NCBI GenBank assembly: GCA_002269645.1
Contig: NIVC01002053.1
Location: forward strand, 62,001-126,000
Direction of reading: 5' to 3'
DNA from: Macrostomum lignano
Taxonomy: Eukaryota
Length of the DNA: 64,000 nt
The notes below the pieces were generated by a model, which did no database searches, was not told the DNA's origin, and worked only from the letters and a program-made list of their open reading frames with translations. How positions within the stretch are numbered: the first letter of the stretch is position 1; each line of letters starts with the position of its first letter. This document shows, piece after piece, positions 26,766 through 63,478 of the stretch. The position numbers and the translations under genes were made by a program.

Positions 26766-27137
26766 GTCCTTGCGGGTATAGAATCATAAAACCCCACGCG
26801 AGTAAAAATATTGATAGCACAGTTGCAAAAATCGGTGGCAACATTTTCTGTATAGCGAAACTGTTTTGGTTTAATTTAATGAAAAATCAGGACTGAAACT
26901 GCTCCAAGCTATTCTTAGCTTTTCAGAAGAAGAGCCTGATGGCATCCCATGCAGTCTACTATGCGCATGTTATATGTAAAGCATTTTAGCAGTGGTCGAA
27001 CATTGATTTTAGTCTCTTTTTAAATAAGAGCAGCGCTCACATGTAGCTAGCCTGGATATGTAGCTCTTCTTCTCATTCCACCAGCTGTAAGAGTGATTAG
27101 AGTTAGGATGCTCTCTCCTAGTTCAGCTCCAGTCACA

Positions 27138-28085: not shown

Positions 28086-29259
28086 TCGTGCTTTAATAAA
28101 TACGAGTGTAAATCTAAAAGTGATTCAAATAACCCAGGAAGATGCGCGAACTGACTTATTCTAAAATAGTCACATTATGTCACCGGATAAAGTAATAATG
28201 CCTCACCCACAATGTCACATCCACAGACAGGGCAGGGCCGCAGGATGCAGGTACTACACATCCTACACAAAATCCTTTCTGATATTTCATTCGCATTTCC
28301 CAGCAGCACTGTTCCCATTCTCGGCAGTCTCTCGGACACGCAGCTTCGGTCAGCTGTATAATCGGCTGTCAAGGACTGGCCGCATCTGCAGAAGTGCTGC
28401 ATGGAAACACACATGTGTTATGCATGTGTATTTTTAGCGCCTACTGATACTGGAGACTCCCGTCCACAAGAGGGGGTGGTCCTTCCGACCGCGCTTCCTT
28501 CTTAGCTAATGGATTTCATAGCTGGAGCAAAAGGAAATGTTTAGTTGACTAAAAATTGCTATTCTGTATTTTCTCAACTACAGTCAATTCAACAGGTGAA
28601 GTAGAAGGACGCGATGTACTTAAAATCAGATACAAAGAGCAGATGTTTGCAGACTTTGCTTAATGAACTTGGTAAACTGGTGAACTTGCCAGAAGACTCT
28701 GGCAAAGGGAGAATTAGGCAGATAATTAGGGATTTTCGAGGCACCAGGGCAACGGAAGAATTAGGTAATTAGGGAACTTTGAGGCGCCAAGGCAACGCGA
28801 GAATTAGGCAGGTAATTAGGAAACTTCGAGGTACAGAGGCAACGGGAGAATTTAGGTGATTCTTGGGAATCAGTAGCAGCATGTAAAATCCCAATGGCTG
28901 CGGCAGGAGTTAACAGGTGCCAACAACACTGCCATCCAGTTTATTTTTACTTCACAACAATGGCCCTGGAGGATTTTCTCACTACTATTTCTAGCCTCTG
29001 TGCAGTAGGACCGTAAAACACCACCAAAAGGAAACCCGGGCAGTTGCATAAGGGAATTCCGGGACGTAATAGTCGCTATTGTTTTCTATTTTAAGCTATT
29101 TGCGATGTTGGCTTTTCCCCGGCAATCTTGCTCGAGCCGGAGCCAGATAATATAAATTGAAGCAGATTCGGGCAGAAAATTGTATAGCAAAATTGATTTA
29201 TAAAATCTGATTTGGTGAAATATTTGACAACACGTATCAGCTGAGCAGTTTGCTGTAGG

Positions 29260-29757
29260 ATGCAGTTTTTCTGCTTAATCTCCCCTCTGCTGGCCCTCTG
29301 GATTTTCCCCGCTCCCATTCTCGCAGCGCCCCTCGGAGCCGGCGACCTCTTCAGGTCGTGCAGCGCCTCGGTGCCCGGCCTGTCGCAGGACAAGCTGGCA
29401 TCGGGCCAGCAGATTTTCTCTCTGGCCCCACCGGCCGAGCTGCGAGGCGGCCCAGCAAGCGTGACCGAACCGCCTGTGGGCGACGGCGACTCTCCGTGCC
29501 CGTTCGCTCAGACGAAGAACTTCACCTTCGAGGGCAAGCCGTGCCTTGGCGGCGCTCCCTGCTTCACGGACCGGGTCTGCCTGTCCGCAGAACCGAAGTC
29601 TCTGGATGGGGATAGGTACCGCTGCAGCAAGGGCATCCGGCTTGAGGAGTTCAGCCAGGTGGCTTTTGTGTACATTGGCTCATGCAGGGGCTTGCACCTG
29701 TATGAGCGAGTGATAGTGCACCCACAGATGTGCGTACTGCTAACACTTGAGCATTGA
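29260..29757 (+). CDS. Cargo ORF/exon, copy A: putative secreted Cys-rich protein (likely true exon 29260-29658 ending at a GT donor)
   Basis: N-terminus MQFFCLISPLLALWIFPAPILA is signal-peptide-like; GC3-rich codons in an AT-rich context; six Cys after the leader; CAG|GTGGCT donor at 29658/9. Family not recognised. Confidence 0.55.
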   Translation: MQFFCLISPLLALWIFPAPILAAPLGAGDLFRSCSASVPGLSQDKLASGQQIFSLAPPAELRGGPASVTEPPVGDGDSPCPFAQTKNFTFEGKPCLGGAPCFTDRVCLSAEPKSLDGDRYRCSKGIRLEEFSQVAFVYIGSCRGLHLYERVIVHPQMCVLLTLEH

Positions 29758-30803
29758 ATCTGTTTGTAATTACATGTATTCCTGCTGCATGTCCAGCTAC
29801 ATACTCAGGTGCTTTTCTACCCTGTCAATCAATGTTTTTGCAGTTACAGCACCTCTTTTTTATCCAAGCACTGAATAATTACAATGGTTTTTTCTACTTT
29901 TACACTTGTTTTTGTAATGCTTTTCATAAATATGTAAATAAATTAAGCGGATTTTCATCTGGTCTGGTCTGAGCCTGATTGGCCCAGAAATTCAATGAAA
30001 AAAGGAAACCTTAAGCTGAAGGCTTTAATAAACATTTTCTAAGGAAAAATATTCGTACACAAGGGTATGCATGGATTTGTGTGCAGACATATAGTTGGCA
30101 ATAGTTTATAGTCTAATAAACTGCATGGACTACTCACAGTTTAGCTGTCCATGTCAGCTAGCCCCCGATATCGTATGTACCTGTATGAAGAATTGTTGCG
30201 CACGTTAGACACAATTAAAACAGTGCATTGCTTGCTCTTCAACATTGCCCTTATTGAGCAGTATAGTATCGATGCAGTCCCAGAGCAGGTTCTGCATTTT
30301 CGTGACGTACACCACACACCTGCAGTTATGCACGCGGGAATGCCGCAAAAAGAATTCGCGACGTGTTTTCCGCGCGTTTCATGCATCTCAGATTCAGTTG
30401 CTGAATATGGAAGCAGAAAAAATGCATGGGAATTCCGTTTGCATTCTTTCGTTTCCGGTCATCCCAGATGTTGTGAAACTCGAAGAACGCTTTATTAAAT
30501 GCTCGAAAAGTTAAAAATATTGCTATTTTACATGTATATCAATTTTTATATCGGATGCCCTTTTACCGTCCTTTACCGGAGAAGTACCAGTACACTGGAT
30601 GCATGGCATGCAGCCCACGAAGCAGGTGTCTCTGCAGTCTGAGCCTTTTTGCGACCACGAGACTATTTGAAGCTTAGGGATTATCGAATTTATAAGTGGC
30701 TGATGGATATTTACATTTTGTATCTACTGTAATATGTATAGGCGTACACACAGGGACTACTAAATTCTGTCAGTAGTCCCTGGGCGTGCATGCTATATAC
30801 AGT

Positions 30804-32805
30804 ATGTTTAACAAAAGATAAACAATCAAAAGAAATAAACAAAAGAAAAGGTAAACGGAAGTTTATCTGGGGATGTGAACAACAATCGGCCTTTGACCGC
30901 ATAAAACGAATACTTCAGGAACGTCTGGAACTGGCCATTTTCGATCCTAACCTGCCCACGATTTTGACAACAACCGACGCTTCAGATGTCGGTATCGGTG
31001 CAATTTTGTCACAAACACAAGCCGAAACCGAGGTTCCAATAGCATTTGCATCCCATGCACTTTCCGAGCGGGAACAAAACTACGCTGTGGACGAGCGCGA
31101 AGCACTTGCCTCTGTCTGGGCATGTGAACACTTGGCAAAATACGAGCTTTTTGCTGGGACGACATTTCATTTTACAAACTGATCATTCTGCACTAACGAG
31201 CCTCCTACGACATCACAGTAACAAGAAGAAGTAAAAAAAATTCACACGTCGGTAGGTTCGGCTGTCCGAATTCGACTACGACATAGTCTACAAGCCCGGA
31301 AGCACCAACTAAGTGGCTGATGCCCTATCCAGACTACCAGTCGTCGATGGACTGGACAGTAAGGATAACGAAGACGATACTACTATCCGCAGCATTCTGC
31401 TTGCAAACGATATTGACACCCCTTCTACAAGAAACCTGCAGAAGCTAACGAGCACATACATGTATACCATAATCCAGGAGGTTATGAAGGCCGTCCAAAG
31501 CTCCCAAACAATTGATAAAAAGAAGACAGAGCTCAAGGCCTTTGCACAGATACAAGACGAACTGACGATAGAAAACGGAATCCTGATCCGTGGTGAACAA
31601 ATCGTGCCGCCCAGCAGCCTAGTCAAGACAATCCTGAAGCGTGCCCATGAAGGACACCCGGGAATCGTACGAATGAAACGACTTCTGCGATCGGCATACT
31701 GGTGGCCAGGTATGGATAGCGCCATAACGAACTATGTCAAGTTCTGTCTACCATGCCAGGACAGTGCTAAGTCGCACAAAATTATCGTGCCAAACGGTGG
31801 ACCGGTTGAAAAGCCTGACCGACCCTGGTCAAAGCTCGCGATTGACATCACCGGGCCGTTTGCAATCGCTCCACAAAATCAACGATTCATTGTCGCGCTC
31901 ATTGATTACTACTCGTCATATCCCGAGATCCTTCTCACTGGAGACACGAGATCACCAAGGCTGATCCACTGGCTGACAGAGGTTTTCAATCGCTTCGGCA
32001 ATCCTGATACCTTGGTATCTGACAATGGAAGCAACTTTGTCTCCAGAGAAATGGAGGACTTTCTCGCTTCATGAGATATCCGACACGAATGTGTCCCACT
32101 GTATGAGCCAAGACGAAACGGCAAGGTGGAAGTCTTCAATCGAACGCTGAAGCATGCGGCACAAATCTTCGAGGTTGAGCGGAAGAGTTTCGAAGAGGGC
32201 ATGCAACAGAATATATTCAGCTACCGCACAACGCCGAATGAGAACGGAGACACACCTGCAAAACTGCTATTTGGCCGCGACATAAGATCAAATTTCCAGC
32301 CTCGCAGAGCAACCGAGGTCAATGAAACACAGAACGAGCTAGTGACCACATTAAAACAAGAACCGCACCAAGTATTCAAGCGACACTTCAAGGTCGGTGA
32401 TCTGGTACGTGTTCGTTTGCCACATGTGCCAAAGGGCAGGTCCCCTTTCACCTCTCCATTCAAAGTCATCAAAGTGGTTGGCAACATCACATACCGATTG
32501 GACAATGGAAAGGTTTGGACTGCGCGCAATTTGGTACCATTCAGACAACAAGCGATAGATCCAGTCGAGATACAGTCAAGTGGAGCGCGCCAACACCAAC
32601 AGCATGTCCGTCGGTCTAAAAGACAAAACAAAGGAATGCCACCTAAGCGACTGATTGAGGAAATATGAACAACCAAGTGAAGAGTGCTCTATGAAGAGGG
32701 CTCCTATACGATAACGGATTATTTCCTCTCCCTTTTGTTAGCACAAATATACGATTAGACGGAACGAACCGTCTTAGGAATACACATCAGCTATATACGC
32801 TCGTA
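30804..32805 (+). mobile_element. Degenerate Ty3/Gypsy LTR-retrotransposon pol fragment (RNase H, integrase)
   Basis: TTDASDVGIGAILSQ, FASHALSEREQNYAVDEREALA, TDHSAL, ADALSRLP, HEGHPGIVRMKRLLRSAYWWPGM..C..C, AIDITGPF, LVSDNGSNF, NGKVEVFNRTLK; frameshifts and stops. Confidence 0.93.
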
Positions 32806-33932
32806 TTCAAGGACCATTAGGAACTTTAGTAGTCCTTGACTATGTTATGTGCATGTACGAACGGTACACTGTATATAGCACGTACGCCTAGGGACTACTG
32901 ACAGAATTTAGTAGTCCCTGTGTGTACGCCTATACATATTACAGTAGATACAAAATGTACATCCATCAGCCGCTAAATAATATTCGATATATAGTCATAA
33001 ATTCGATAATCCCTAAGCTTCAAATAGTCTCGTGGTCGCAAAAAGGCTCAGACTGCAGAGACACCTGCTTCGTGGGCTGCATGCCATGCATCCAGTGTAC
33101 TGGTACTTCTCCGGTAAAGGACGGTAAAAGGGCATCCGATATAAAAATTGATATACATGTAAAATAGCAATATTTTTAACTTTTCGAGCATTTAATAAAG
33201 CGTTCTTCGAGTTTCACAACATCTGGGATGACCGGAAACGAAAGAATGCAAACGGAATTCCCATGCATTTTTTCTGCTTCCATATTCAGCAACTGAATCT
33301 GAGATGCATGAAACGCGCGGAAAACACGTCGCGAATTCTTTTTGCGGCATTCCCGCGTGCATAACTGCAGGTGTGTGGTGTACGTCACGAAAATGCAGAA
33401 CCTGCTCTGGGACTGCATCGATACTATACTGCTCAATAAGGGCAATGTTGAAGAGCAAGCAATGCACTGTTTTAATTGTGTCTAACGTGCGCAACAATTC
33501 TTCATACAGGTACATACGATATCGGGGGCTAGCTGACATGGACAGCTAAACTGTGAGTAGTCCATGCAGTTTATTAGACTATAAACTATTGCCAACTATA
33601 TGTCTGCACACAAATCCATGCATACCCTTGTGTACGAATATTTTTCCTTAGAAAATGTTTATTAAAGCCTTCAGCTTAAGGTTTCCTTTTTTCATTGAAT
33701 TTCTGGGCCAATCAGGCTCAGACCAGACCAGATGAAAATCCGCTTAATTTATTTACATATTTATGAAAAGCATTACAAAAACAAGTGTAAAAGTAGAAAA
33801 AACCATTGTAATTATTCAGTGCTTGGATAAAAAAGAGGTGCTGTAACTGCAAAAACATTGATTGACAGGGTAGAAAAGCACCTGAGTATGTAGCTGGACA
33901 TGCAGCAGGAATACATGTAATTACAAACAGAT

Positions 33933-34430
33933 TCAATGCTCAAGTGTTAGCAGTACGCACATCTGTGGGTGCACTATCACTCGCTCATACAGGTGCAAGC
34001 CCCTGCATGAGCCAATGTACACAAAAGCCACCTGGCTGAACTCCTCAAGCCGGACGCCCTTGCTGCAGCGGTACCTATCCCCATCCAGAGACTTCGGTTC
34101 TGCGGACAGGCAGACCCGGTCCGTGAAGCAGGGAGCGCCGCCAAGGCACGGCTTGCCCTCGAAGGTGAAGTTCTTCGTCTGAGCGAACGGGCACGGAGAG
34201 TCGCCGTCGCCCACAGGCGGTTCGGTCACGCTTGCTGGGCCGCCTCGCAGCTCGGCCGGTGGGGCCAGAGAGAAAATCTGCTGGCCCGATGCCAGCTTGT
34301 CCTGCGACAGGCCGGGCACCGAGGCGCTGCACGACCTGAAGAGGTCGCCGGCTCCGAGGGGCGCTGCGAGAATGGGAGCGGGGAAAATCCAGAGGGCCAG
34401 CAGAGGGGAGATTAAGCAGAAAAACTGCAT
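33933..34430 (-). CDS. Cargo ORF/exon, copy B
   Basis: 165-aa ORF identical to copy A except I>V (GGCATC>GGCGTC). Confidence 0.55.
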   Translation of the reverse strand: MQFFCLISPLLALWIFPAPILAAPLGAGDLFRSCSASVPGLSQDKLASGQQIFSLAPPAELRGGPASVTEPPVGDGDSPCPFAQTKNFTFEGKPCLGGAPCFTDRVCLSAEPKSLDGDRYRCSKGVRLEEFSQVAFVYIGSCRGLHLYERVIVHPQMCVLLTLEH

Positions 34431-34987
34431 CCTACAGCAAACTGCTCAGCTGATACGTGCTGTCAAATATTTCACCAAATCAGATTTTATAAATCAATTT
34501 TGCTATACAATTTTCTGCCCGAATCTGCTTCAATTTATATTATCTGGCTCCGGCTCGAGCAAGATTGCCGGGGAAAAGCCATCATCGCAAATAGCTTAAA
34601 ATAGATAACAATAGCGACTATTACGTCCCGGAATTCCCTTATGCAACTGCCCGGGTTTTCTTTTGGTGGTGTTTTACGGTCCTACTGCACAGAGGCTAGA
34701 AATAGTAGTGAGAAAATCCTCCAGGGCCATTGTTGTGAAGTAAAAATAAACTGGATGGCAGTGTTGTTGGCACCTGTTAACTCCTGCCGCAGCCATTGGG
34801 ATTTTACATGCTGCTACTGATTCCAAAGAATCACCTAAATTCTCCCGTTGCCTTGGCGCTTCGGGAATCTCTAATTACGTCATTCTACTGTTGCCTTGGT
34901 GCCTCATAAATCCCTAATTAACTAATTCTCCCGTTGCCCTGGTGCCTCGAAAATCCCTAATTACTTGCTTAATTCTCCCTTTGCCAG

Positions 34988-36574
34988 TCTTTGACTTACT
35001 TTGACTTAGCTGCAGGGCTGTCCTGGGGGGACACAGCGGGAAGGCGCGAACGCCCATTCCGCTAATCCCTGAACGGCCGACGCGTCGCTATGGACGAAGG
35101 GTTGGCGCCGCCCAGGGAGGTCCCCCAGTGTCGCCAGCAGCTATGGTGCTCTCTGGAAAGGAGAGTTCAGCCCTGCGGGTTTGCACGCTTCAGTAATAGA
35201 TGTGTGTGGCCCGAGGTAAGTGAGTCTGGCTCGCGTAAAGGCGGGACAGATGCTGACGAAATTCTCAACGGTTTCGTCACCTGAGTTACAGAAACTGCAG
35301 ATGGCGTTGGTGGCGTTGCCCTGCAGGTACTGGTGCCTAGAAGCAGCCGTGACCTGAGAGGGTCATGGTGGCAGCCCGGATGTCTCTGCGCGAGAGGCGC
35401 AAGAGGAGCTTCCGGGGCTGGTGAGAGGGCTGAGGGACAGCGCTTCTGGATTGTCTGCAGGTAGTGCAGTTCACCAAAGTCGAGCGGTGCTGGGTCCTGA
35501 TCCACGCTTTGATGCGCGAGTCGATGACACAGCCAGAAATCGGGACAAGGGGTTCGGGACCGAGAGAGGAGCCGGAGGCGCCAACTTTTGCAAGGGCGTC
35601 AGCCAACTCATTTCCTCGGATCCCCACATGCCTCGGAACCCACTTAAGGGTGATTTTGTTGGTGGAGCCCAACATGTTGAGGAGTTTGATACAGTCGAGG
35701 ACTGTAGCAGAATTGGTACTACAGCCACTGATGGTGTGCAAGGCAGCTTGGCTGTCCGAATGGAAAATGATGTTCTTACCGGTTACGCCAGTGGCGAGAA
35801 GCTTTGCAGTGCAGGAGCTGATGGCCAGAACTTCATTTTGGAAGACACTGGAGTTGACCCCAGTGTACTGAGCGTGGGTTGCGATGACCCTCTCGTTCAG
35901 GAAGATTCCAACATCAAAACCGGTGTTGGCTGACTGCTTAGAACCGTCGGTGTAGCAATGAAGCTCACCAGGGTTCCAGTGGTCATTGATGGTATCGCGC
36001 GAGTCGATAGCTACGGAGTAGCGTTGTCTCAGGTTGAGCGTTGAGGCAATGCCATCGGTGAAGACGCGATTGGCCTGACACTCGTTGAGAAAGTTGAGGC
36101 ACAGGTCGCTATGCGGGACGAGGTTCCGCTTAGCAGGTGCCCTCATGTAAAGGAATTTGACACCAGCATCAAGTAAACGCCGCGTCGTTCTAGCCGCCTC
36201 ACCCCTGACGAAGAGGTCGAGAGGCGGTAGATTAAGGAAGGCCCCCCATGCCGGCAAAGGGCGTGGACCTGGTGGCGTTGCAGATAAGCCTACACGCTCT
36301 GCCCTGGATCGTGTTGAGCAAATCTGCATGGCTTTTGACCTGGGTAGCGCTAACTCAGACAACCGAGGCCTACGTAATGGCAGGTCTAACTACGGAAGTG
36401 TAGGTCCACCAAAGCCGCTTTGGGGAAAGACCCCAAGAAGTGCCAAGTACTCGTCGGAGCTGGGCCAGGATGGCTGAGGCACGCTTGGCTTTTGCTTTCA
36501 CGTGAAAGGACCAGTTGAGCCGGTGGTCAAGTATGACCCCGAGACATCTGGCCTGGTGCGCGAAAGCAATATCT
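34988..36574 (-). mobile_element. 5'-truncated LOA-clade non-LTR retrotransposon (RNase H region, 3' UTR, AAGTC/TAAG tail)
   Basis: CYTDGSK, SVFQNEVLAI, FHSDSQAAL, WVPRHVGIRGNELADALAKVG; tail reads ...CTGCAGCTAAGTCAAAGTAAGTCAAA on the minus strand; short or imperfect TSD (CAG[AG]TCT). Confidence 0.88.
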
Positions 36575-36808
36575 CAGAGTCTTCTGGCAAGTTCACCAGT
36601 TTACCAAGTTCACTAAGCAAAGTCTGCAAACATCTGCTGTTTGTGTCTGATTTTAAGTACATCGCGTCCTTCTACTTCACCTGTTGAATTGACTGTAGTT
36701 GAGAAAATTCAGAATAGCAATTTTTAGTCAACTAAACATTTCCTATTGCTCCAGCTATGAAATCCATTAGCTAAGAAGGAAGCGCGGTCGGAAGGACCAC
36801 CCCCCTTG

Positions 36809-36890
36809 AGGGCTAGCCGAATGGGCGACCCTCGCCTCCCTGCTGTGTCTACGGACCCACCCTGCAGCTAAGTCAAGTAAGTAAGTCAAG
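36809..36890 (+). mobile_element. LOA LINE extreme 3' end (starts AGGGCTAGCCG, ends in AAGTC/TAAG tail)
   Basis: Homologous to 40637-40716. Confidence 0.8.
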
Positions 36891-37551
36891 GGGTTTCCGC
36901 TACAGACAGAGGCCCCAGCTGCAGAATGAGGCGCCAGCTGCAGAGAGAGGCGCCAGGAAATCCCTATTAGGTAATTAGGGATTTTCGAGGCGACAAGGCA
37001 ACGGGAGAATTATGTAATTAGGAATTTTCGAAGCGCCAAGGCGTGGGGAGAATTATGTAATTAGGGATTTTCAAGGCGCCAAGGCAACGCGAGAATTAGG
37101 CAGGTAATTAGGAAACTTCGAGGTACAGAGGCAACGGGAGAATTTAGGTGATTCTTGGGAATCAGTAGCAGCATGTAAAATCCCAATGGCTGCGGCAGGA
37201 GTTAACAGGTGCCAACAACACTGCCATCCAGTTTATTTTTACTTCACAACAATGGCCCTGGAGGATTTTCTCACTACTATTTCTAGCCTCTGTGCAGTAG
37301 GACCGTAAAACACCACCAAAAGAAAACCCGGGCAGTTGCATAAGGGAATTCCGGGACGTAATAGTCGCTATTGTTATCTATTTTAAGCTATTTGCGATGA
37401 TGGCTTTTCCCCGGCAATCTTGCTCGAGCCGGAGCCAGATAATATAAATTGAAGCAGATTCGGGCAGAAAATTGTATAGCAAAATTGATTTATAAAATCT
37501 GATTTGGTGAAATATTTGACAGCACGTATCAGCTGAGCAGTTTGCTGTAGG

Positions 37552-38049
37552 ATGCAGTTTTTCTGCTTAATCTCCCCTCTGCTGGCCCTCTGGATTTTCC
37601 CCGCTCCCATTCTCGCAGCGCCCCTCGGAGCCGGCGACCTCTTCAGGTCGTGCAGCGCCTCGGTGCCCGGCCTGTCGCAGGACAAGCTGGCATCGGGCCA
37701 GCAGATTTTCTCTCTGGCCCCACCGGCCGAGCTGCGAGGCGGCCCAGCAAGCGTGACCGAACCGCCTGTGGGCGACGGCGACTCTCCGTGCCCGTTCGCT
37801 CAGACGAAGAACTTCACCTTCGAGGGCAAGCCGTGCCTTGGCGGCGCTCCCTGCTTCACGGACCGGGTCTGCCTGTCCGCAGAACCGAAGTCTCTGGATG
37901 GGGATAGGTACCGCTGCAGCAAGGGCGTCCGGCTTGAGGAGTTCAGCCAGGTGGCTTTTGTGTACATTGGCTCATGCAGGGGCTTGCACCTGTATGAGCG
38001 AGTGATAGTGCACCCACAGATGTGCGTACTGCTAACACTTGAGCATTGA
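37552..38049 (+). CDS. Cargo ORF/exon, copy C
   Basis: 165-aa ORF, same protein sequence as copy B. Confidence 0.55.
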   Translation: MQFFCLISPLLALWIFPAPILAAPLGAGDLFRSCSASVPGLSQDKLASGQQIFSLAPPAELRGGPASVTEPPVGDGDSPCPFAQTKNFTFEGKPCLGGAPCFTDRVCLSAEPKSLDGDRYRCSKGVRLEEFSQVAFVYIGSCRGLHLYERVIVHPQMCVLLTLEH

Positions 38050-38505
38050 ATCTGTTTGTAATTACATGTATTCCTGCTGCATGTCCAGCTACATACTCAG
38101 GTGCTTTTCTACCCTGTCAATCAATGTTTTTGCAGTTACAGCACCTCTTTTTTATCCAAGCACTGAATAATTACAATGGTTTTTTCTACTTTTACACTTG
38201 TTTTTGTAATGCTTTTCATAAATATGTAAATAAATTAAACGGATTTTCATCTGGTCTGGTCTGAGCCTGATTGGCCCAGAAATTCAATGAAAAAGATGAA
38301 ACTTTAAGCTGAAGGCTTTAATAAACATTTTCTAAGGAAAAATCTTCATACACAAGGGTATGCATGGATGTGTTCAGACATAATAGTTGGTTGGCAATAG
38401 CCCCGTTTATAGTCTAATAAACTACATGGACTACTACTGTTTAGCTGTCCATGTCAGCTAGCCCAGTATATCGCATATGCATGGTGAATCGTTGCGCACG
38501 TTAGA

Positions 38506-40716
38506 GAGACTGGTGCTCTGGCGCCTACTCTCTGTGGAACTGAAGAACAAGCCGCTCAGTGAGAACCAGCACGCCTTTCGGGCAGGCAGGTCCACGGAGA
38601 GCGCGCCACACGTTTTGGTTGACATGCTGGAGAAAGCCGTTCTTGATAATGGCTACGCTCTCGCTGTCTTCCTCGACATTGTTGGAGCCTTCGATAATGT
38701 CCTCTTTGAGGCTTTTGACAGAGCTCTACGTGCTAGAGGAACCCACTCGCACCTCACCCGGTGGATCATGTATATGATCAGCCACCGTACTGCCACCGCA
38801 CACCTGTTGGGCCACCAACGGACGGTAACCGTCTGCAAAGGCAGCCCCCAGGGCGGTGTCCTCTTTCCAGTTCTCTGGAATATGGTCATCGATGAGCTCC
38901 TCCAGGACAGCCATCTTGACCCCATCCTCAAGGTCGGTTACGCCGATGATGTCACAGCCGTGGCATCCGGACAGTCACCTGAAACCCTTAGGGACCTTCT
39001 GCAAAACTTTATTTGCTCTGCTGAACGATGGGCGGACAGGTGCGGCCTCAGGCTCTCTGAGACGCGATCATGTTCACCAGCAGGGTAAACTGGCGTATTC
39101 GCCCACAAAGCTTTACGGGGTGGAAATTCCATCCTGTAAGCAAAACAAGTGTCTCGGCGTTACGCTGGACCACCGGCTGAGCTGGTCCACCCACGTCCAG
39201 GCCAAAACCAAAAAAGCCCTCGCGATTCTTGCGCAGCTGCGCAGAGCCGTCGGCACCACCTGGGGCCTCACCCCAAAACGGCTCTGGTGGATCTACACCG
39301 CAATGCTCCGACCGGCCGTTACCTACGCCGGCCTGGTCTGGACCAGCGCCTTGCAGATTAAAACCTGCTACGAAGCCCTCAAAAAGGTGCAGGGACGCGC
39401 GTGCCGCATGATCCTGAATGCCCCGCTCTCTGCTCCCTTTGACGGCCTCAACGCCTTTCTTTGCCTCCCGCCTCTGGACATCTTTGTCCGTCGCGAGGCT
39501 GCTAAAACCACCCGCCGGCTCATCGAGGCTGGCGTTAGCTTCAAGCCACAAAGAGCGATGGCGAAGCGCAAGCTCCTGCCGCACTCTGACCTGTGCCTTA
39601 AAGTTCTGGAGGAGAGTGGGAGTGCGGCTGTCCTTTCGGACGCTGAGCCGCGCTCCCTCAGTCTCTACCAACGCTTCAAGGTCACTATCCCCTCCAGGGA
39701 GAACGCCAACGACAGCTGGGCCCCTCAGGAGGTTCACTGCTTTACTGACGGATCCTCCAAAGACGGTTTATCCTTACCAACGGCCGCGTGATTGCTACTC
39801 ACGCCCAACACACTGGCAGACTCTCCAGCGTCTTCCAGAATGAAGTCCTTGCCATCAGCTCCTGTGCAGCTGAGCTCCACTGCAGGGACTTCAAGGACAG
39901 AAGAATCTTCTTCCACTCTGACAGCCAGGCCGCTTTACAGGCCCTGTGTCACATCACTACGAATTCCCGAACAGTCCGCGACTGTATCGGACAGCTTAAC
40001 AAGCTGGCTCGGAGGAACACCGTCCGGCTCACGTGGATCCCAGGACACGCCGGCTTTAAAGGTAACGAGCTCGCCGACTCCCTCGCTAAGGCGGGCTCTT
40101 CCGGCTCGCCCCTTGGCCCCGTGCCCCTGGCCCCCATCCCCGCCACAGTCATTAATCGTCAGATTAACGACTGGGCGGATATCCTGCACTTGCGCAGATG
40201 GGATGGTATCTCCAACTGCCGCCAATCTCGTGCGGCAGTGCCCAATCCATCCCTCAAGCTGCGGAGAATCCTTTTGAACCAAAATCGAAAAGATATCCGC
40301 GCTCTCACTATGACCTTCACAGGTCACGATTGCCTTGCCAGGCACTGTTTCCTCCGAAGTGCCCGCCGGAGCGAACTCTGCCCTTTCTGCAACCCCGAGA
40401 ACGAAGACGCCAAGCACTTCGTCTGCTACTGCTCGGCCTTCAACCGAGACCGGCTCAACTACCTCGGGCCCAACCCGTCCCTGGTCGACGTTTGCTGGCC
40501 TGAGAACATCCCACGGCTCATCCGGTTCCTCCGGGCCACCAAGCGAGCCTCCGTCTTCTCTACCGAAGACAACGCTGCAGACAGGACCGGCAGACCTCCC
40601 TGACCGGCCCCGCGCCCTAGCCTATGCGGGTCTTTCAGGGATTAGCGGAATGGGCGACGCTCGCCTCCCCGCTGCGTCTTCGGACCGCCTGCAGCTAAGT
40701 CAAGTCAAGTAAGTCA
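38506..40716 (+). mobile_element. 5'-truncated LOA-clade non-LTR retrotransposon (RT, RNase H, C-terminal Cys motif), frameshifted
   Basis: FLDIVGAFD, KGSPQGGVLFPVLWN, GYADD, CLGVTLDHRLSW, CFTDGS, FFHSDSQAAL, WIPGHAGFKGNELAD, CPFC; 80-bp flanking duplication; clade call from motif similarity to Lian-Aa1-type elements as remembered. Confidence 0.92.
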
Positions 40717-41679
40717 ATGGACTACTACTGTTTAGCTGTTCATGTCAGCTAGCCCAGTATATCGCATATGCATGGTGAATCGTTGCGCACGTTAGACACA
40801 ATTAAAACAGTGCATTGCTTGCTCTTCAACATTGCCCTTATTGAGCAGTATAGTATCGATGCAGTCCCAGAGCAGGTTCTGCATTTACGTGACGTACACC
40901 ACACACCTGCAGTTATGCACGCGGGAATGCCGCAAAAAGAATTCGCGACGTGTTTTCCGCGCGTTTCGTGCATCTCAGATTCAGTTGCTGAATATGGAAG
41001 CAGAAAAAAATGCATGGGAATTCCGTTTGCATTCTTTCGTTTCCGGTCATCCCAGATGTTGTGAAACTCGAAGAACGCTTTATTAAATGCTCGAAATGAG
41101 GCCAGGTGAAAAGTTCAAAATGTTGCTATTTTACATGTATATCAATTTTTATATCGGATGCCCTTTTACCGTCCTTTACCGGAGAAGTACCAGTACACGG
41201 GATGCATGGCATGCAGCCCACGAAGCAGGTGTCTCTGCAGTCTGAGCCTTTTTGCGACCACGAGACTATTCGAAGCTTAGGGATTATCGAATTTATAAGT
41301 GGCTGATGGATGTACATTTTGTATCTACAGTAATATGTATAGGCGTACACACAGGGACTACTAAATTCTATCAGTAGTCCCTGGGCGTGCATGCTGTATA
41401 CAGTACTCGTATGTACATGTAGATAATATTGCCAAGGACAACTAAAGTTTCTAACTACCCCTAAATATGTATAGCATACATGCAGTAGATAGTAGGGACA
41501 TTATAAATAATTGCATCACTGTATACCAGGTAAAGGTAGCGAAGAAATATAAAACTTATAATGAATGAAGTTTCTTGCAGTTTTGACAACGAGAAAACGA
41601 AACGTACATCATTTATAGACGTATGTATAGTACAGTTTAGTAGGCGAGTGTAGATGTCAAGGGAGTGCTCTCCCTCAAA

Positions 41680-42610
41680 GTACATGATGTAAATGACCCG
41701 CACTACTGAGAGCATAGTGATGTAGCCATGAAAGTCTAACGACCCATGAGCCATGAGCCATGGCAGGAGCCATGTGTAGGAGTTAAAAATCTAGTGCTAA
41801 GCGACATGTGTTTGTGTTTAGCAAAGCCTTGTCTTCTTCTAGATTTCAGCAGGTTCAGGTTCAGATTCAGATGTCGGTATCAGGCTGTAAAACGGATAAA
41901 ATGCCTAATTGGCATTAAGAATAAAGGTGAAAGCAAGGACCATTGCTGTAGAGTGGTCTACAACAGTGGTCCTTGGTGAAAGGCCTGTGTAAACATACAG
42001 GCACTGTCGATTTTCACTTTCAATTGGGGCCAACACCGACATGCGTGACGATGAGAACTTAACGTTTAGCTTGTTATACAGTTATTGTTATTTAAATAGC
42101 CGAGATAAATAATAATTAACTTAATAGTAGATTATTCCGGCTTTCCAAAGGATATGAGAAAAACACATTTTATTTAATGTACTCCACGCGAAAGCAAATT
42201 TCAGACGAATTAAAATTATTGTTTCGCAGAAAACTACAGATCTAATTATTTAATAAAAAATGAATATCCGGATGTAGCTAAGCTAAGGTTGCTATGCTAA
42301 GGTGCAAGGTGTAACTAAGTTTTGAGAATTAAGGTCAACAGTTAGCAGTAGACTATATTACTTAGACTACTCACGGCGGGTTCTAGTAAATCTCTTTGTA
42401 AATTGGTCAATCGATAATATCAATATGTAAGATCGAGGTCAAAGATGATGAATATAGCATTGGGCCTCCAACTTCAATTGATAAGAAAAGCTTTTTATAG
42501 GAAAACTAAAGCCGTTTGTATTCCAATGTTCAATTTCTCAATAAAGACTGCATTACTTTAGCATTTTTTCCAATAGCCATAAGCCATAGGCTAGCTAGCA
42601 ATACCTACAG
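41680..42610 (+). repeat. Dispersed ~0.95-kb repeat R, copy 1
   Basis: Diverged direct repeat of 44755-45720 (shared GAAAGTCTAACGACCC, CAACACCGACATGCGTGACGATGAGAACTTAA, CACGGCGGGTTC). Confidence 0.75.
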
Positions 42611-42634
42611 TGTATATTTAGTACTGTATATTAA

Positions 42635-43196
42635 TAGCCCTGTTCCCCCCGTCCCCATCTTTCGACGGTCATCAATCGTCAGATCGATGACTGGGCTGAC
42701 TCCCATGACAGGGACAGATGGGCGGGCACCCAAAACTGCCGGCAATCTCGTGCCGCAGTTCCGTGCCCCTCTCGCAGGCTCAGGAACGTCCTTCTGAACC
42801 AAACTCGGAAGGATATTTGAGCCCTTGCCATGACCTTTACCGGCCATGGCTACCTCGCCAGGCACTGCTTCATCCGAGGCGACCTCGAGAGTGAGCTTTG
42901 CCCCTTTTGCGAGTACGACAATGAAGTTGCTCAGCACTTTGTCACTTCCCTTTCTTTACCAGAGACCGGCTACGCTACCTCGGGCCTAACCCGTCCATTG
43001 ACGAGGTCTGCCAGCCCGACAAGCATCCCACGGCTCATCCGGCTCCTCCGGGCGACAAGACGAGCCAATTTTTCCCCACGGAAGATCACGCTGCAGGACG
43101 GACCGGCGGACCACCCTGACCCGGCGGACCGCCTCTCTCTGCAGCTGGGGTCTCTGCATGTAGCTGGTGCCTCTGCCTGTCTGCGGGCCTTCAGGG
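42635..43196 (+). mobile_element. LOA LINE fragment (C-terminus and first 3' UTR hairpin), ends at ...TTCAGGG
   Basis: Homologous to 40125-40640 (MTFTGHGYLARHCF...ELCPFC). Confidence 0.85.
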
Positions 43197-44085
43197 ACGG
43201 GAGTCTCCTGCATCAGTAGGCGCTAAAAATGTGTTTCCATGCAGCACTTCTGCAGATGCGGCCAGTGCTTGACAGTCTATTATATAGCTGACTCAAGCTG
43301 CGTGTCTGAGAGACTGCCGAGAATGGGAACAGTGCAGCTGGGAAATGCGAATGAAATATCAGAAAGGATTTTTTTATTACGTGTATAGTACCTGCGATCT
43401 GCGACCCATCCCTGCCTGTGGATTAGACATTCGATGAGGCATTATTACTTTATTCAGTTCAGTCATATAGTTAGTATATATCATTTAACTTCATTTGAGT
43501 ATTCGAAAGCTGCATTTGAGTTTTTCAAAAGCATCATTTGAGCTATTGGTACTAATCATTTGAGTACGAGCGTATTCGAAATCATCACTCGAGTTATTCG
43601 AAATCATCATTTGAGTTATTCGAAAGCATAATTTGAGTATTCGAAATCATCATTTGAGTTATTCGAAAGCATCATTTGAGTTATTCGAAAGCATCATTTC
43701 CATTTGAGTATTCGAAATCATCATTTGAGTTATTCGAAAGCATCATTTGAATATTCGAAAGCAGAATATTCGAAAGCATCATTTGAATATTCAAAAGCAT
43801 CATTTGAATATTCGAAAGCTGCATTTGAGTTGTTCGAAAGCATAATTCAAGATATTCAAAGCACCTTTCGAGTTATTCGAAAGCATCATTCAAGCTATTC
43901 AAAAGCACCTTTCAAGTTATTCGAAAGCATCATTCAAGCTATTCAAAAGCACCTTTCAAGTTATTCGAAAGCATCATTAAAGCTATTCAAAAGCACCTTT
44001 CAAGTTATTCAAAAGCATCATTCAAGCTATTCAAATGCACCTTCCGAGCTATTCAAAAGCATCATTTGAGTTTCGGAATCATCAT
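43195..44085 (-). repeat. Distal part of the right arm (unique segment plus 22-bp satellite, inverted relative to 27138-28465)
   Basis: 43195-43460 is a diverged reverse complement of 28170-28465; 43480-44085 is (TTTGAGCTATTCGAAAGCATCA)n. Confidence 0.75.
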
Positions 44086-44164
44086 TTAAATAATGTATGC
44101 ATGTTACTTAATAAGTAATTATACATGTTAAGTATTTACAAGTTAAGTAATTATACATGCCTAC

Positions 44165-44680
44165 TATATTTCAAGGACTAATAGGAACTTTAAGTCCTTG
44201 ACTATATTATCTGCATGTACGAACGGTATACACACTGTATGAAGCATGTGTACGACCAGGACCACTGACAGAATTTAGTAGTCCCTGTGTTCGCCTATAC
44301 ATATTACAGTAGATACAAAATGTACATCCATCAGCCACTTATAAATGCAATAAATGCGATCCCAAAACTTCGAAAAGTCTCGTACGTGGTCGCAAAAAGG
44401 CTCAGACTGCAGAGACACCAGTTGTTTCGTGGGTTGCATGCCATGCATCCAGTGTACTGGTACTTCTCCGGTAAAGGACGGTAAAAGTGCATCCGATATA
44501 AAAAAATGATATAAAATAGCAACATTTTGAACTTCGCATCTGGCCTCATTATGTCTGCACATGTCTGCCAACTTTATGTCAGCACACATATGCATACATA
44601 CCCTTGTGTATGAATATTTTTCCTTAAAAAACATTTGTAAAGGCCTTCAGCTTAAGGTTTCCTTTTTCCATTGAATTTAA
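44165..44680 (-). mobile_element. Element copy D, internally deleted terminal fragment
   Basis: Matches 32806-33180 and 33590-33700, includes both terminal hairpin positions, lacks the cargo exon. Confidence 0.7.
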
Positions 44681-44754
44681 ATATATCATTAGGCACAGAA
44701 TTCAGTAGGCGAGGGCCGATGTCAGAGGGAGTATATAGCTAGTGCATTTTCTTA

Positions 44755-45720
44755 AGTGCATGACGTAAATGACCCGCAATACTATTTAAGAGCATACTGA
44801 GTACCGATGTAGTCATGAAAGTCTAACGACCCCATTTTCCTTGGCGCAGCTAGGAGCCAGGATGTGTGGGAGTTAAAAAATCTAGTGCTTTAAGCGATAT
44901 GTGTTTGTGTTTAGCAAAGTCTTGTCTTTTTCTAGATGTCAGGTTTAGGTTCTTTTTTTAGGTTTTTAAGGGTTTAGGTTCAGATTCAGATGTCGATTTT
45001 AGGCTGTAAAACGGAAAAATCCCTAATTGGCATAATTGGCATAAAGAATAAAGGTAAAAGGCGCCCTGATTTTCACTTTTGGTTAACGCCAACACCGACA
45101 TGCGTGACGATGAGAACTTAATCTTTATATCTTGTTATATATTTATTGTTATTTTGATAGCTAGGATAAAAGATTTTTATTTCAATAGTGGCCTTCAACT
45201 TGCCAAAGGATATGAGAAAAATGCACTTGATTTAATGTAGTCCACGCTAAAGCAAATTTTAGACGAAATAAACTTCTTGTTTCGTAGAATACTACAATAG
45301 TTGATAAAAGATAAAATATATTACGACGTAGCGTAGCTAGCTTAGCATGCTATGCTATGCTATTGCTAATTTGCTAAGGTCTAACTAAGGACTAAGGCCA
45401 ACAGCCAGCAGTCAGCTAGGCATAACTCCGCGCCAAAACTATAATTCAATACTAGTAGGCTATTTACTTAGACTAGTCACGGCGGGTTCGAGTAAATTTC
45501 TTTGTAAATCGGTCAATCGAGTTCGAGTAATATTGATATGTGAAAATGTGAAATCGAGGTCAAAGATGATGAAGACATAGGGCTCCAACCCCAATTGGTG
45601 GGAAAAGCTATTTATAGGAAAAACTAAACCCTTTTAAATTCCAAAGGTCAATTTCTCAATAAAGTCTGTATTGCTTTAATTTTAGTATTTTTTCCTATAA
45701 CCATAGGCTAGCAATACCTA
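44755..45720 (+). repeat. Dispersed repeat R, copy 2
   Basis: Aligns to 41680-42610. Confidence 0.75.
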
Positions 45721-48700
45721 TAATCTAAATCTTCATCTTATACCATACTATACTAGGCCCCTATGCTATACTTAGGGGTTGGACAAGATCTTTATCTTGA
45801 TTGTCAAGATCTCGGCACTTTTCTTAATCTCAATCTTTTTTTAAGATCTCTAAAAAAGTCAATATTTGTGACTATATGACTAGGCCTATTGGTGACTACA
45901 ATATTATCATATTTATGTTTGATATAGGCCTACATCTAGTTACCAACAAGCTCAATATTAATAATTGTTTTTCCTTCTATTATGATCATTGTACCATCTT
46001 ATTGTTATCATGCAGCCATCTAGTGTATTCCTTACAGATTCAGCAAAATACTTAGGTCCATCTCTATTAACAACCTAGATGGAATTGATGACTAACAAGC
46101 CCTAACTATCTACTCATATGGATACAATAAAAGAACTGCAGCCATTGCCTACATCATCCGTCACTATCATTGAGTGCTACCACTACCAAATTTGCCTCTG
46201 TTGTATTCGCCTTTGTCATTTGATCCAAAGTATGCCATTTAATTGTCACAATTAGCACTAATAGATAGAATAGTGTAAACAGGCCTACTAGATGCTAATT
46301 AAATTAGGCTTAATCTCAAATCTTAATTGAATCTCAATTGTCTTGAAAGCATAGATCTTGAGCCTCAAAAATCTCAAAATGTGATATTGTCTAACCGGCT
46401 AACCCCTAACTATATTATATATTGATAGCTATACAGCTATTTAAAATTTAGTTTATTTAAGTCATTCAAAAATTGATATGCCCTGTTATTTGTAGCAGAA
46501 TATATAAAATCAAAAAATGTTTAAATAAAAGTAGATCTTATAATTAGTTTAAAAATCAAATATTACAATATATATAGTCTATATAATTATTATTTAAACT
46601 AATAGACATTTAATAATTTTATGGCCTATTCATAGGGCCTAGTGTTAGTGTTTTTGAGGTAGGGCAAAGAAATAAAGATTATTTTCTCGCTTGTGGCTTG
46701 GTTGGCTGATACCAAATTGGGGTGGTTCTAACTTTTAAATTGTCACTGGCATTGAGCTCACACAAATTAAATCTGAAAAATGGTGCAAACAAATCCCAAC
46801 AAAATTTCTCCTATAATACTCTGGCTGCCAGGGTCCTCAATTCTGGGGGAAGGATAGTTTTGTTGTTAGTGAGCAGTCTCCATTAGGCACAGTTGTTCAG
46901 AGTGGGTCCTTAGACACCGAATTGGATGTACATCAAATGCTTCAAATGCTTAAATGGTTACTATGAGTAGCCTAGTGCTGCCACCATTGTTATTTTTATA
47001 TTATAGAATGTTGAGGTCTCAGAGCTTTCTTTGAGATGAAACTTGGTTATTTTATGCCCCATGGGCAAATGACTCAATATAGGCTATGGTTCTGATTAGT
47101 TAATTTGTGATTAAAGATTGTTTAATGTTTATTAATAGTACTGAGAACTAAGGAAAATATTAGCTAGATTAAACAAGGTGACTTATTAATATTATTTTGT
47201 CAACCTAACAATCAGATGATAGTTGGCAGTACCGCGGGTGCACTAATAAATGTTAAGCAAAAGTTACACACAAGCTAATAGACTCAATCAAGTTGTACTA
47301 AAGGTTAAGTATTAATAATCAGTTAAAGTTATGAGAAAGGGAAGGGAAAGAAAAGGCAAGGTCAAGACAAGGTCAATGCCAGGGAGCATCATTAAATAGA
47401 ACAAAAAGAGCAGAATGTAGACAAACAGGGACAAACACTGGGGACAAAACATGGACACAAAAGACCAAACATGGAAATAGAATTTTGAAATGCAGTCAAA
47501 CATAGAAAAACAAAAAATAACCAAATGGGGGATGCACAAAACCAGGGAAAGGAGCAAGGAGGCCAAACCCAGGAAGCAAGAAAATGATGAAATTTCGCCA
47601 TTACGGGGCATCTTATGGTAGACAAAATGGGCCAACCCAGGTAACAGAAAAAGGAGGGTCACAAGATGGTCTGGAAAATTAATTTCTTAGCAGAAATTTT
47701 CAGTGCATAGTAGTGCATATCAAAAGCTAACAACAAAATGAAACATCATGTATAGTACAGAATCAAATTGACATCAAGCTGACCAGTTGGAAGCAACCAT
47801 CATATTTTTTACCAATTGCTAATTTTAACTCTCAAACTGAAAAGTGCATAATGCAATAGAAAGTTTTAAATTAAAAAGCACCAATAAAAGCCAAATGTTT
47901 TATTACTTTGATTTAGTCCACATTTTACTAGATCTTCTAGTGCCACTGCATTTTTGCTATGAATTTGTCAATAACAAATATAGGGCTTGATGTAGAACTT
48001 TGTACTTTAGCTTCATGCATAGCATATGCCAAAAATATATTAAAATGTAGGCCTATTCCTGCATACACACAACACTTTCCTTCAGGGAGTATGGAGGCCT
48101 AGTAGCCAAAAAGTCCCAAAATCCTAATGTAGAAAGTATATTAATCCTAGTAGTATAATCATGTATTGATTAGTTCTACTTGTTTAAAATTAAAAATAGT
48201 TATAAAAGCCTAACCAATTACCAATTTCTCAGAGAAATTATCAAGGTTCCATTTTCTAAATAAATTGCACCTCCCCTCTCCATCTCCTGTTTCCCTCCCT
48301 CTGTGTCTCTTGGCCTTCTCTCTATCTCCTTGTCTGTTTAACCACAATAATAATGGAAATTGGCATCCCAAAGAATGAACTACACAAAATATATCTCATA
48401 TTTAAACATGAGCAATAAATATTTTCTCCATGATAAGCAATCTTAACATGCATAGAAACATTGTTATTCTATTATATTTGATAAAACAAACCTTTTTTGG
48501 TAAATAAAGCTCTCTTTTCATAGAAGTTAGAACAGTCTCTATAAAGTATAGATTAATTAAAAATTAAACATTGTCATAATTGAAACTCTTGTTTTAATAA
48601 CAATTTATCTAGAGTTCTGGATCTATAAAATACAACAATTATTTATAAAATTAGATATCTTTTCTTATTAGTCTCTATACCAGGGGTCCCTAACCTTCTA

Positions 48701-63270: not shown

Positions 63271-63478
63271 GGGGGGGGGGTTGTAGCCTAGTAGTTAGAG
63301 CGTCGGACTCATGACCTGAAGGTTGGGGGTTCGATTCCCGATCCCAGTTTTAACAATGTGTTATCTACAGCAAGACACTTAACGCTTCAGTTCGCCCAGC
63401 TGTAAAATGGGAGCCAGCATTAGCTGGGGTAATTGAGGCTGTGTGTGGCGACCTCCAGTCCTTGGACTGAACAGCCGT
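63271..63478 (+). mobile_element. tRNA-derived SINE with CORE-like central motif
   Basis: A-box-like TAGCCTAGTAGTTAGAG, B-box GGTTCGATTCC, then CAAGACACTTAAC...CAGCTGTAAAATGGG resembling the MIR/CORE domain. Confidence 0.7.

Follow-up and report, generated by a model that had tools for sequence, protein, structure and literature searches.

The window, as we call the whole 64,000-nucleotide stretch of DNA that was analyzed, contains a palindrome with an inserted block of 6388 nt (6.4 kb) inside one of its arms, and this block carries an extra copy of a small gene. The palindrome arm lies in a locus rich in duplications, conversions, and satellites. The features are listed below in order of position. 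Note that "LOA-like" is used only as a label for the LINEs and that all three copies (LOA1, LOA2, and LOA3) are 5'-truncated.

28187..28701, minus strand: uninterrupted paralogous arm on the copy A side, collinear with 36576-36808 (97.4%) and 43197-43453 (88%)
28470-28461, minus strand: empty site in the copy A arm, CTTG-T-GGACG, in which T is 28466
32806..34987, minus strand: gene element copy B, inverted partner of copy A (28701-30810) and of copy C
34991..36575, minus strand: LOA1, a separate LINE insertion with a 341-aa open frame and RNase H, located where arm and element meet in copy B
36576..36808, plus strand: left half of the interrupted (B side) arm, its left limit being the LOA1 5' end
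36809-43196: the block
36808/36809: junction 1
36809..36889, plus strand: block start, the final 81 nt of the 3' UTR of a LOA-like LINE, made up of the conserved 3' domain and TAAGTCAAG-type tail repeats
36890..36956, plus strand: one unit of 19-bp satellite "a" and about three units of 19-bp satellite "b", homologous to the array boundary 26520-26764 left of the A side
36957..37153, plus strand: 43-47-bp satellite, found at the head of every gene-element copy
37154..38505, plus strand: gene element copy C, first part
37552-38049, plus strand: 165-aa ORF in copy C with a signal-peptide-like N-terminus
38506..40716, plus strand: LOA2, a 5'-truncated LOA-like LINE with reverse transcriptase and RNase H, frameshifted, inserted in copy C
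40717..41525, plus strand: gene element copy C, second part; homology to copy B ends at about 41467 and to partial copy D at about 41525
41636..42636, plus strand: repeat R, reaching the 5' end of the LOA3 LINE body
42637..43196, plus strand: block end, the LOA3 body of 560 nt, 5'-truncated, comprising the C-terminal coding region and 3' UTR up to ...CCTTCAGGG
43196/43197: junction 2
43197..43453, plus strand: the interrupted arm's right half, beyond which lies a degenerate 22-bp satellite (43491-44087)

Identity among the gene copies is mosaic. B and C do not differ from each other for about 1 kb, and copy C extends further upstream than either A or B, with the 19-bp satellites and extra 43-bp units, such that the 43-47-bp satellite is more extensive there than in the other two. 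This greater upstream reach suggests that copy C came from another, fuller unit. Repeat R is 68-80% identical to a second repeat, R' (44701-45730), located just outside the palindrome.

The arm was cut at one point. When 36546-36808 and 43197-43490 were joined, the composite aligned over its full length with 28730-28150 of copy A, taken as the reverse complement, in agreement with the initial annotation, which had described a host arm cut once and contiguous in copy A. At the empty site copy A reads ACCACCCCCTCTTGTGGACGGGAG, and the interrupted arm reads ACCACCCCCCTTG, then the block, then ACGGGAG. The flanks of the block are contiguous at this empty site, indicating a single acceptor break, and the arm lost 1-3 nt at most. 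No target-site duplication was found when the flanks were compared with the copy A arm. Identity to copy A drops from 97% (97.4%) left of the insertion to 88% right of it, the step from 2.6% to 12% divergence falling exactly at the junction. Together with the identity of B and C, this step speaks for a genuine insertion that did not happen recently. Given the size of the step, polymorphism within the species would not be expected.

The two ends of the block are pieces of LINE 3' UTR. The first 81 nt (AGGGCTAGCCGAATGGGCG...TAAGTAAGTCAA) match the final 75-79 nt of LOA2 (40643-40717) with 88-89% identity. The right end (42637-43196), the coding part of which has an in-frame stop and a frameshift, terminates in ...TGCGGGCCTTCAGGG. 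The LOA3 body stops at the same 3' UTR point where the 81-nt tail begins, the ends overlapping by 2-4 nt (AGGG). LOA2 at 40625-40653 reads through the breakpoint (GCGGGTCTTTCAGGGATTAGCGGAATGGG), and all four intact relatives are contiguous across it: LOA1 (minus strand) and LOA2 in the window plus L003 and L004 on metagenome contigs. When the block end is placed before the block start, the sequence is ...GGGCCTTCAGGGCTAGCCGAATGGGCG, and it aligns with each of the four across the breakpoint. Relative to a LINE 3' UTR that is unbroken elsewhere, the block ends are circularly permuted. A LOA end of about 80 nt at the block start and a body stopping at the matching point had been reported initially, and both are borne out by the 81-nt tail, the 560-nt body, and the relatives that read through. 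The intact copy cited then, LOA2, has the sequence attributed to it, one base away from the assigned 40626-40654. It is contiguous through the point as claimed, although it lies inside the block and represents another LINE lineage than the pieces at the block ends (72% nucleotide and 54% amino acid identity).

Extended homology is absent from the junctions, which show nothing beyond microhomology or small indels. Junction 1 is in effect a blunt join, and only junction 2 offers microhomology that could be used, a GG. The proposed CCTT.AGGG microhomology to the target needs revision: the CCTT similarity is offset by one base, and the GG at junction 2 is retained. The 4-nt repeat at the block ends (AGGGCTAGCC... 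and ...GCCTTCAGGG) is direct rather than inverted, and no terminal inverted repeats were found at these ends. As there is neither a target duplication nor a terminal inverted repeat, the junctions are the work of neither a transposase nor target-primed reverse transcription. LOA1 and LOA2 look like ordinary LINE insertions, having a 3' end at the downstream flank and a target-site duplication, which is the short AG(AG)TCT for LOA1 and 80 bp for LOA2 (38426-38505 = 40717-40796). In contrast, the block ends do not, because the 3' end of the tail adjoins the 19-bp satellite rather than the arm and the body has lost its 3' part where it meets the arm. Models that go through RNA (3' transduction, or a read-through transcript followed by reverse transcription) were rejected, as the right end has no 3' domain for priming and no target duplication is present.

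Pfam places PF00078 in LOA2 and PF00075 in both LOA1 and LOA2 (reverse transcriptase, then RNase H), and the LOA3 body aligns to the region downstream of the RNase H. The closest relatives rank alike for body and tail, LOA2 first and LOA1 second: the LOA3 coding part is 72% identical to LOA2 and 56% to LOA1, and the tail 89% and 79%, respectively. The tail has CTAGCC where LOA1 and LOA2 share ATTAGCG, a difference indicating that the tail, like the body, belongs to a third lineage. These comparisons are consistent with body and tail being one element, LOA3, but fall short of proof because all lineages conserve the last ~85 nt of the LINE and the two pieces are not bracketed by a target-site duplication (the best candidate around the reconstituted LOA3 was no better than those in shuffled sequence). 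A homologue search with the LOA2 RNase H returned only five distant matches, none close to LOA3, and two of these gave intact 3' ends. The initial annotation had staked its reading on the two LINE pieces sharing a subfamily and on both flanks belonging together; our comparisons did not assign the pieces to different subfamilies, and both flanks come from one arm.

The LINE breakpoint is at CAGGG, which pairs with CCCTG and forms the 5' side of the stem that closes the hairpin-rich conserved 3' domain, a domain common to all LOA-like elements examined (5/5). Elsewhere in the block, 28 sites match the arm 10-mer at 7/10 or better. With so many comparable patches, microhomology by itself does not account for both junctions falling at one LINE position and was rejected as the only cause of that coincidence; a single cut in a circle does account for it. 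Roughly estimated rather than computed, the chance that two independent LINE breakpoints fall within ~4 nt is ~0.2-0.5% in an element 2.2 kb or longer, and the similarly rough figure for two arm breakpoints within 3 nt in the 515-nt arm is ~1%.

Re-integration of a DNA circle is the simplest and most economical explanation of the block, and we consider it the probable one. A paralogous unit of the locally amplified gene family, in the order LINE LOA3, 19-bp satellites, 43-bp satellite, 165-aa ORF, element 3' part, and repeat R, would have left the chromosome as a double-stranded circle of ~6.4 kb, or ~4.1 kb if LOA2 inserted later. A single break at the stem-forming CAGGG of the LINE 3' domain would have opened the circle, and end joining would have inserted the linear molecule where the B-side arm of the existing palindrome had suffered a double-strand break, bluntly at junction 1 and via GG at junction 2, with the loss of 1-3 nt of arm. 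A staggered break that was then filled in could have placed AGGG (2-4 nt of the circle) at both ends. The outcome would be the third gene copy, C, inverted relative to B. Copy C would later have exchanged sequence with B by gene conversion, and the insertion would have blocked A/B conversion outward of it.

The single cut in the arm, the exact permutation, the type of junction, and the mosaic identity of the copies can be read from the sequence, whereas the circle, the route by which it formed, and the timing are inferred. The R/LOA3 5' junction at ~42636/42637 has no target-site duplication and could be the point of circle closure; equally, two R copies in the donor could have recombined. Neither the unpermuted donor nor a circle-closure junction was identified within the window, and no second LOA3-type copy or further R copy was found there. 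Partial copy D together with R' (44120-45730) was considered as a remnant of the donor and rejected, being only 68-85% identical and inverted relative to R.

The same block could in principle arise with no free circle if the donor were a tandem duplication of the LOA3-satellites-gene-R unit, from which a full period was copied by break-induced or template-switch synthesis, or from which two equivalent breaks freed a linear unit that was end-joined. Such a product would be topologically identical to the observed block, MMBIR/FoSTeS has been discussed as compatible with junctions of this kind (PMC7450558), and the GG at junction 2 and a neighborhood full of duplications, conversions, and satellites are in keeping with it. 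However, entry and exit would have to hit the same LINE position within 4 nt although each unit offers 28 equally good microhomology patches, and junction 1 has no terminal microhomology to prime synthesis. Moreover, the window contains no tandem arrangement in which R lies beside 19-bp satellite "a". We regard a tandem donor as unlikely. The structural part of the original proposal, one insertion with permuted ends placed in a single cut, is supported; its mechanism, a circle opened in the LINE and integrated, is the most economical one, tempered by the identical product of a tandem donor and by the unproven origin of both LINE pieces from one element.

Chance could also have placed a dead-on-arrival LINE tail of 81 nt and an unrelated fragment of a LINE, truncated at its 3' end, at the two limits of a segment that was moved or built stepwise. 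Severe 5' truncation is common in LINEs, the truncation point coincides with the foot of a conserved RNA stem that might halt reverse transcriptase, and no target-site duplication links body and tail. Against this, the 3' end of the tail meets satellite rather than arm, so target-primed reverse transcription did not put it there, nor could that process produce a 3'-truncated body. Both LINE and both arm breakpoints would also have to agree to within a few bases, and we judge such a coincidence very unlikely. Chimeric assembly joins at both junctions are highly improbable: the locus is very repetitive, with three near-identical gene copies and many arrays, but neither junction lies in sequence common to the joined partners, mis-joins do not give two reciprocal junctions that are exact in both arm and LINE, and both the step in divergence found there and the tract of B/C conversion bear the mark of evolution. 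That the block is ancestral to the arm and was deleted from copy A is scarcely credible even though the window holds no outgroup arm to polarize the change, since deletion between the AGGG repeats would leave CTTGAGGGACGGG where copy A has CTTGTGGACGGG, and the permuted LINE would still need explanation.

To our knowledge, germline re-integration of eccDNA, although often debated, has rarely been documented at single-base resolution outside yeast, cattle KIT, and a few human segmental duplications. Yeast examples of amplification and translocation through circles include the wine-yeast region of Zygosaccharomyces origin and the CUP1 and HXT6/7 circles. As proposed for our block, the yeast circles form from repeated units and insert at new sites with permuted ends, but in yeast there was direct observation both of the circles and of multiple copies with different permutations. 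The serial translocation via circular intermediates that underlies color sidedness at cattle KIT has been summarized (PMC7450558). The flipped order relative to the linear reference, the single acceptor break, the junction microhomology of only 0-2 nt, the tiny deletions and duplications, and the breakpoints in interspersed repeats all resemble the present case. However, the cattle donor locus, circle-fusion junction, and phenotype are known and the segments are hundreds of kb rather than 6.4 kb, whereas the permutation here is judged against a LINE family and not against a donor.

Human segmental duplications can show a flip from A-B/C-D to B-A/D-C (PMC7450558), and eccDNA-mediated duplication has been described (PMC7188851). 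The diagnostic logic, permuted order together with non-homologous junctions, is the same. The human duplications are large and distant with both copies in hand, whereas the present block is small and lies beside its own paralogues in a palindrome. In new Rsp-like arrays of Drosophila simulans and D. mauritiana, the truncated first and last monomers together make one monomer (PMC7403614). There too the end repeats sum to one unit, which was read as a footprint of eccDNA re-integration, and the junctions have microhomology, but a short satellite monomer gives a weak signal, whereas here the point is unique in a LINE 3' UTR and the 6.4-kb unit is complex and includes a gene. The novelty claimed for this locus was thus overstated, the same footprint having been published for all three systems, and acceptance of the circle reading in those reports (PMC7450558, PMC7188851, PMC7403614) counts in favor of a circle here. 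The block is a clean example of a known footprint and not a new category of mechanism. Its value is that the unique LINE 3' UTR landmark makes the permutation unambiguous and that the empty paralogous site is in the same window. Should the donor be found, the locus would provide a compact case for circle formation (by R recombination or end joining), for opening, and for a new inverted copy joining palindrome gene conversion.

It is conceivable, albeit decidedly doubtful, that the opening point was not random and that the LINE 3' domain, whether extruded from a supercoiled circle in hairpin or cruciform shape or bound by LINE-encoded protein, is a preferred point of eccDNA opening and integration. 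If so, LINE tails would help circles to re-enter chromosomes and to spread lineage-specific genes.

Searches outside the window gave no convincing relative of the gene within the block. Exact-protein look-ups gave no match for either allele of the 165-aa ORF or for an integrase fragment, and the ORF has no Pfam domain and returned nothing in a homologue search. A metagenome scan yielded only two weak partial matches of 32-37 residues, which were judged irrelevant. The cargo of the block is a complete intronless ORF with its upstream satellites. Among the remaining long ORFs Pfam recognized only a C2-domain fragment, and Rfam detected one tRNA.

The 6388-nt block at 36809-43196 sits within a large palindrome, seen on self-comparison of the window, where it interrupts the B-side arm. 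The order on the right (copy B, arm, degenerate 22-bp satellite) mirrors that on the left, and the B side has two additional pieces relative to the A side: the block and LOA1, one of three copies of a LINE that we label LOA-like.

Features of the palindrome outside the block.
27133-28108, 22-bp satellite, A side
28187-28701, minus strand, A-side arm, ~515 bp
28701-30810, plus strand, gene element copy A
30810-32806, palindrome centre, 2-kb LTR-retrotransposon pol fragment (RT-RNase H, integrase zinc finger and core)
34987-32806, minus strand, gene element copy B, the right-side mirror of A
34991-36575, minus strand, LOA1 LINE, at the arm/element boundary of copy B
43491-44087, degenerate 22-bp satellite, B side

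LTRs are absent around the central pol fragment. LOA1 was inserted at the exact junction of the arm with the 43-bp satellite of copy B and is flanked by a short AG(AG)TCT target duplication (34986-34990 and 36576-36582). As it retains a 341-aa open frame, LOA1 is probably a young insertion. Within the 22-bp arrays the A side is homogeneous (95% matches) and its B-side partner degenerate (76%).

When 36546-36808 is joined to 43197-43490, the product can be aligned over its whole length to the reverse-complemented A-side arm, which bears out the single cut in the host arm proposed in the initial annotation. The empty site on the A arm reads ...ACCACCCCCTCTTGTGGACGGGAG... and the interrupted B arm reads ...ACCACCCCCCTTG, the block, then ACGGGAG..., with 1-3 bases lost and without target duplication. 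The first 81 nt of the block (36809-36889) have 88-89% identity to the end of LOA2, the LINE copy inside the block, and its last 560 nt (42637-43196) comprise the C-terminal coding region of a LINE with its stop codon and the 3' UTR up to ...TGCGGGCCTTCAGGG. We call this body and tail LOA3. Across the break point the uninterrupted elements read GCGGGTCTTTCAGGG-ATTAGCGGAATGGGCG (LOA2), GGCCGTTCAGGG-ATTAGCGGAATGGGCG (LOA1), TGCGGGCCTTCAGGG-GTTAGCGACATGGGCG (L003) and GCCAGGG-GCTAGCGGAATGGGCG (L004), the last two being LOA-like elements from metagenome contigs reached via only distant protein matches. Joining block end to block start gives GGGCCTTCAGGGCTAGCCGAATGGGCG, which is collinear through the break point with all four intact references and lacks no LINE nucleotides there, so that the LOA 3' UTR is restored as had been claimed. 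The sequence AGGG is common to both block ends, an overlap of 2-4 nt depending on whether three or four G were originally present. We estimate the probability that independent breakpoints would agree so well in both LINE and arm at ~1e-5.

It had been recognized that this argument would suffer if the two LOA3 pieces came from different subfamilies. The three LOA-like copies are the only ones in the window, have mutual protein identities of 42-55% and include no second LOA3-type copy to serve as reference.

Pairwise identities of the LOA-like copies.
LOA2-LOA1: coding 57%, last ~80 nt 84%
LOA2-LOA3: coding 72%, last ~80 nt 89%
LOA1-LOA3: coding 56%, last ~80 nt 79%

Set against the coding identities, those of the last ~80 nt indicate that the 3' domain is conserved across lineages, and the closer match of the tail to LOA2 (89%, against 72% for the body) does not point to a separate origin. 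The ranking of LOA2 and LOA1 by identity is the same for body and tail. Moreover, the LOA3 tail has CTAGCC where LOA1 and LOA2 both have ATTAGCG, and hence belongs to a third lineage, as does the body. The sequences are thus consistent with a single element and give no ground for the subfamily objection, although they fall short of proof as no target-site duplication was found around the reconstituted LOA3 (score 8; shuffles average 7.5).

The two new junctions keep orientation and the arm and LINE are exactly complementary across both, which requires insertion of a permuted segment. Inversion, unequal exchange and tandem duplication were rejected because each would create only a single new junction or give an incorrect orientation. 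Neither target-primed reverse transcription nor a transposase can be responsible, given the missing target duplication, a tail that faces satellite and a body 3'-truncated against the arm. We infer that the segment was probably inserted as a circle opened once within the LINE, since one cut of a circle places the same LINE position at both ends with no extra assumption. The main alternative, a tandem duplication at the donor with exactly one period copied or released, is less likely, as it needs entry and exit at an identical position. Microhomology cannot fix that position, since the arm 10-mer is matched no less well at 28 sites in the block than at the real one, and with junction 1 blunt as well the circle is favored. 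Coincidence, artefact or a deletion in A are minor alternatives. The circle would have been closed either by recombination of two copies of a repeat, R, flanking the donor unit or by end joining at the R/LOA3 boundary, and the latter would account for the missing LOA3 target duplication. A staggered break filled in before ligation would fit the 2-4 nt found at both ends. The circle may have been ~4.1 kb if LOA2 entered after the block.

Both footprint and reasoning agree with three published cases: the cattle KIT translocations, as far as they are summarized in PMC7450558, human segmental duplications in which the order of blocks is flipped (PMC7450558, PMC7188851) and Drosophila Rsp-like arrays (PMC7403614). 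Junction scars cannot tell end joining from replicative template switching (PMC7450558, PMC7188851), and the same limit is reached here. The block is a further example of an already described circle footprint, distinctive in its single-base resolution, the empty paralogous site in the window and the landing beside its own paralogues.

The last ~85 nt form a conserved domain in five LOA-like elements, two of them on unrelated metagenome contigs, and include a tail repeat of the TAAGTCAAG type. In their coding regions these elements share only 42-57% identity.

Conserved 3' domains.
36809-36889, LOA3
40636-40716, LOA2
34991-35075, minus strand, LOA1
1575-1663, L003
1207-1290, L004

An alignment fold of the five domains predicts that CAGGG at the break point pairs with CCCTG ~55 nt downstream in a stem enclosing two inner hairpins, with compensatory changes in two hairpin pairs. 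The break would therefore coincide with the base of an inverted-repeat structure conserved among these elements. Such a placement may be due to chance, and it seems highly improbable that the structure was a fragile or preferred opening point of the circle.

Comparison of the arms (28187-28701 versus 36576-36808 and 43197-43453) showed that identity drops stepwise at each insertion.

Identity of B-side segments to the A side.
Element 3' part: 100%, A and B without a single difference over ~800 bp
Left part of the arm, a 233-bp island flanked by LOA1 and the block: 97.4%
Right part of the arm, starting just past the block: 88%, with an additional 19-nt indel
22-bp satellite: ~82%

Most simply, gene conversion would keep the inner palindrome uniform, with the block and later LOA1 acting as barriers to it, and the steps give a relative order of events. 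Copy C, the gene element in the block, matches B without a difference over ~1 kb around the ORF, a stretch in which five differences are private to A (approximate spans A 28890-29890, B 34800-33800, C 37190-38190). In the 3' part (~800 bp) it is C that stands apart, with 25 private differences plus several indels, and A equals B. Hence C exchanged sequence with its inverted neighbor B, which implies a conversion tract spanning the new inverted repeat. The stepped identity and conversion patterns are signs that the block insertion is real and old.

After the tail the block carries a single unit of one 19-bp satellite and ~3 units of another (36890-36956), which match the boundary of the two long arrays that occupy 26032-26764 at the far left end of the A side. 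Those arrays have 28 and 11 units, and ~1.9 kb of unique sequence, 22-bp satellite and arm lies between them and the A-side gene element, as if inserted. Next in the block come a 43-47-bp satellite and copy C. As copy C extends beyond both A and B on its upstream side, it was not copied from either and is derived from a fuller unit absent from the window. All three copies have an intact 165-aa ORF.

Intact 165-aa ORFs.
37552-38049, plus strand, copy C
29260-29757, plus strand, copy A
33933-34430, minus strand, copy B

The proteins are hydrophobic at the N-terminus, have many cysteines and differ at one amino acid, in A. TATAAAT lies ~100 nt upstream and AATAAA ~180 nt downstream. No homologue turned up among 5.8 billion proteins, and Pfam detected no domain. 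LOA2 (38506-40716) is inserted within copy C with an unusually long 80-bp target-site duplication (38426-38505/40717-40796) that is present once in copy A (30125-30209). The two copies are 79/80 identical, which suggests that LOA2 entered later than the block. Beyond LOA2 lie the remainder of element C, a short spacer and R (41636-42636). The related repeat R' (44701-45730, plus strand) is 68-80% identical to R and adjoins D (44120-44678, minus strand), a partial, internally deleted fourth gene-element copy without the ORF, just outside the palindrome. D is inverted relative to R', whereas element and R are co-oriented in the block; D plus R' looks like an older rearranged unit.

Elsewhere, more than 25 unrelated minisatellite arrays (13-61-bp units, 0.2-1.7 kb each) occupy much of the 64 kb, among them 4-787, 3745-5428, 8633-9614, 14241-15227, 51510-52709 and 57037-57867. 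The sole Rfam match in the window is a tRNA gene (63277-63346, plus strand), and the ORF at 2155-3108 (minus strand) includes the beginning of a C2 domain.
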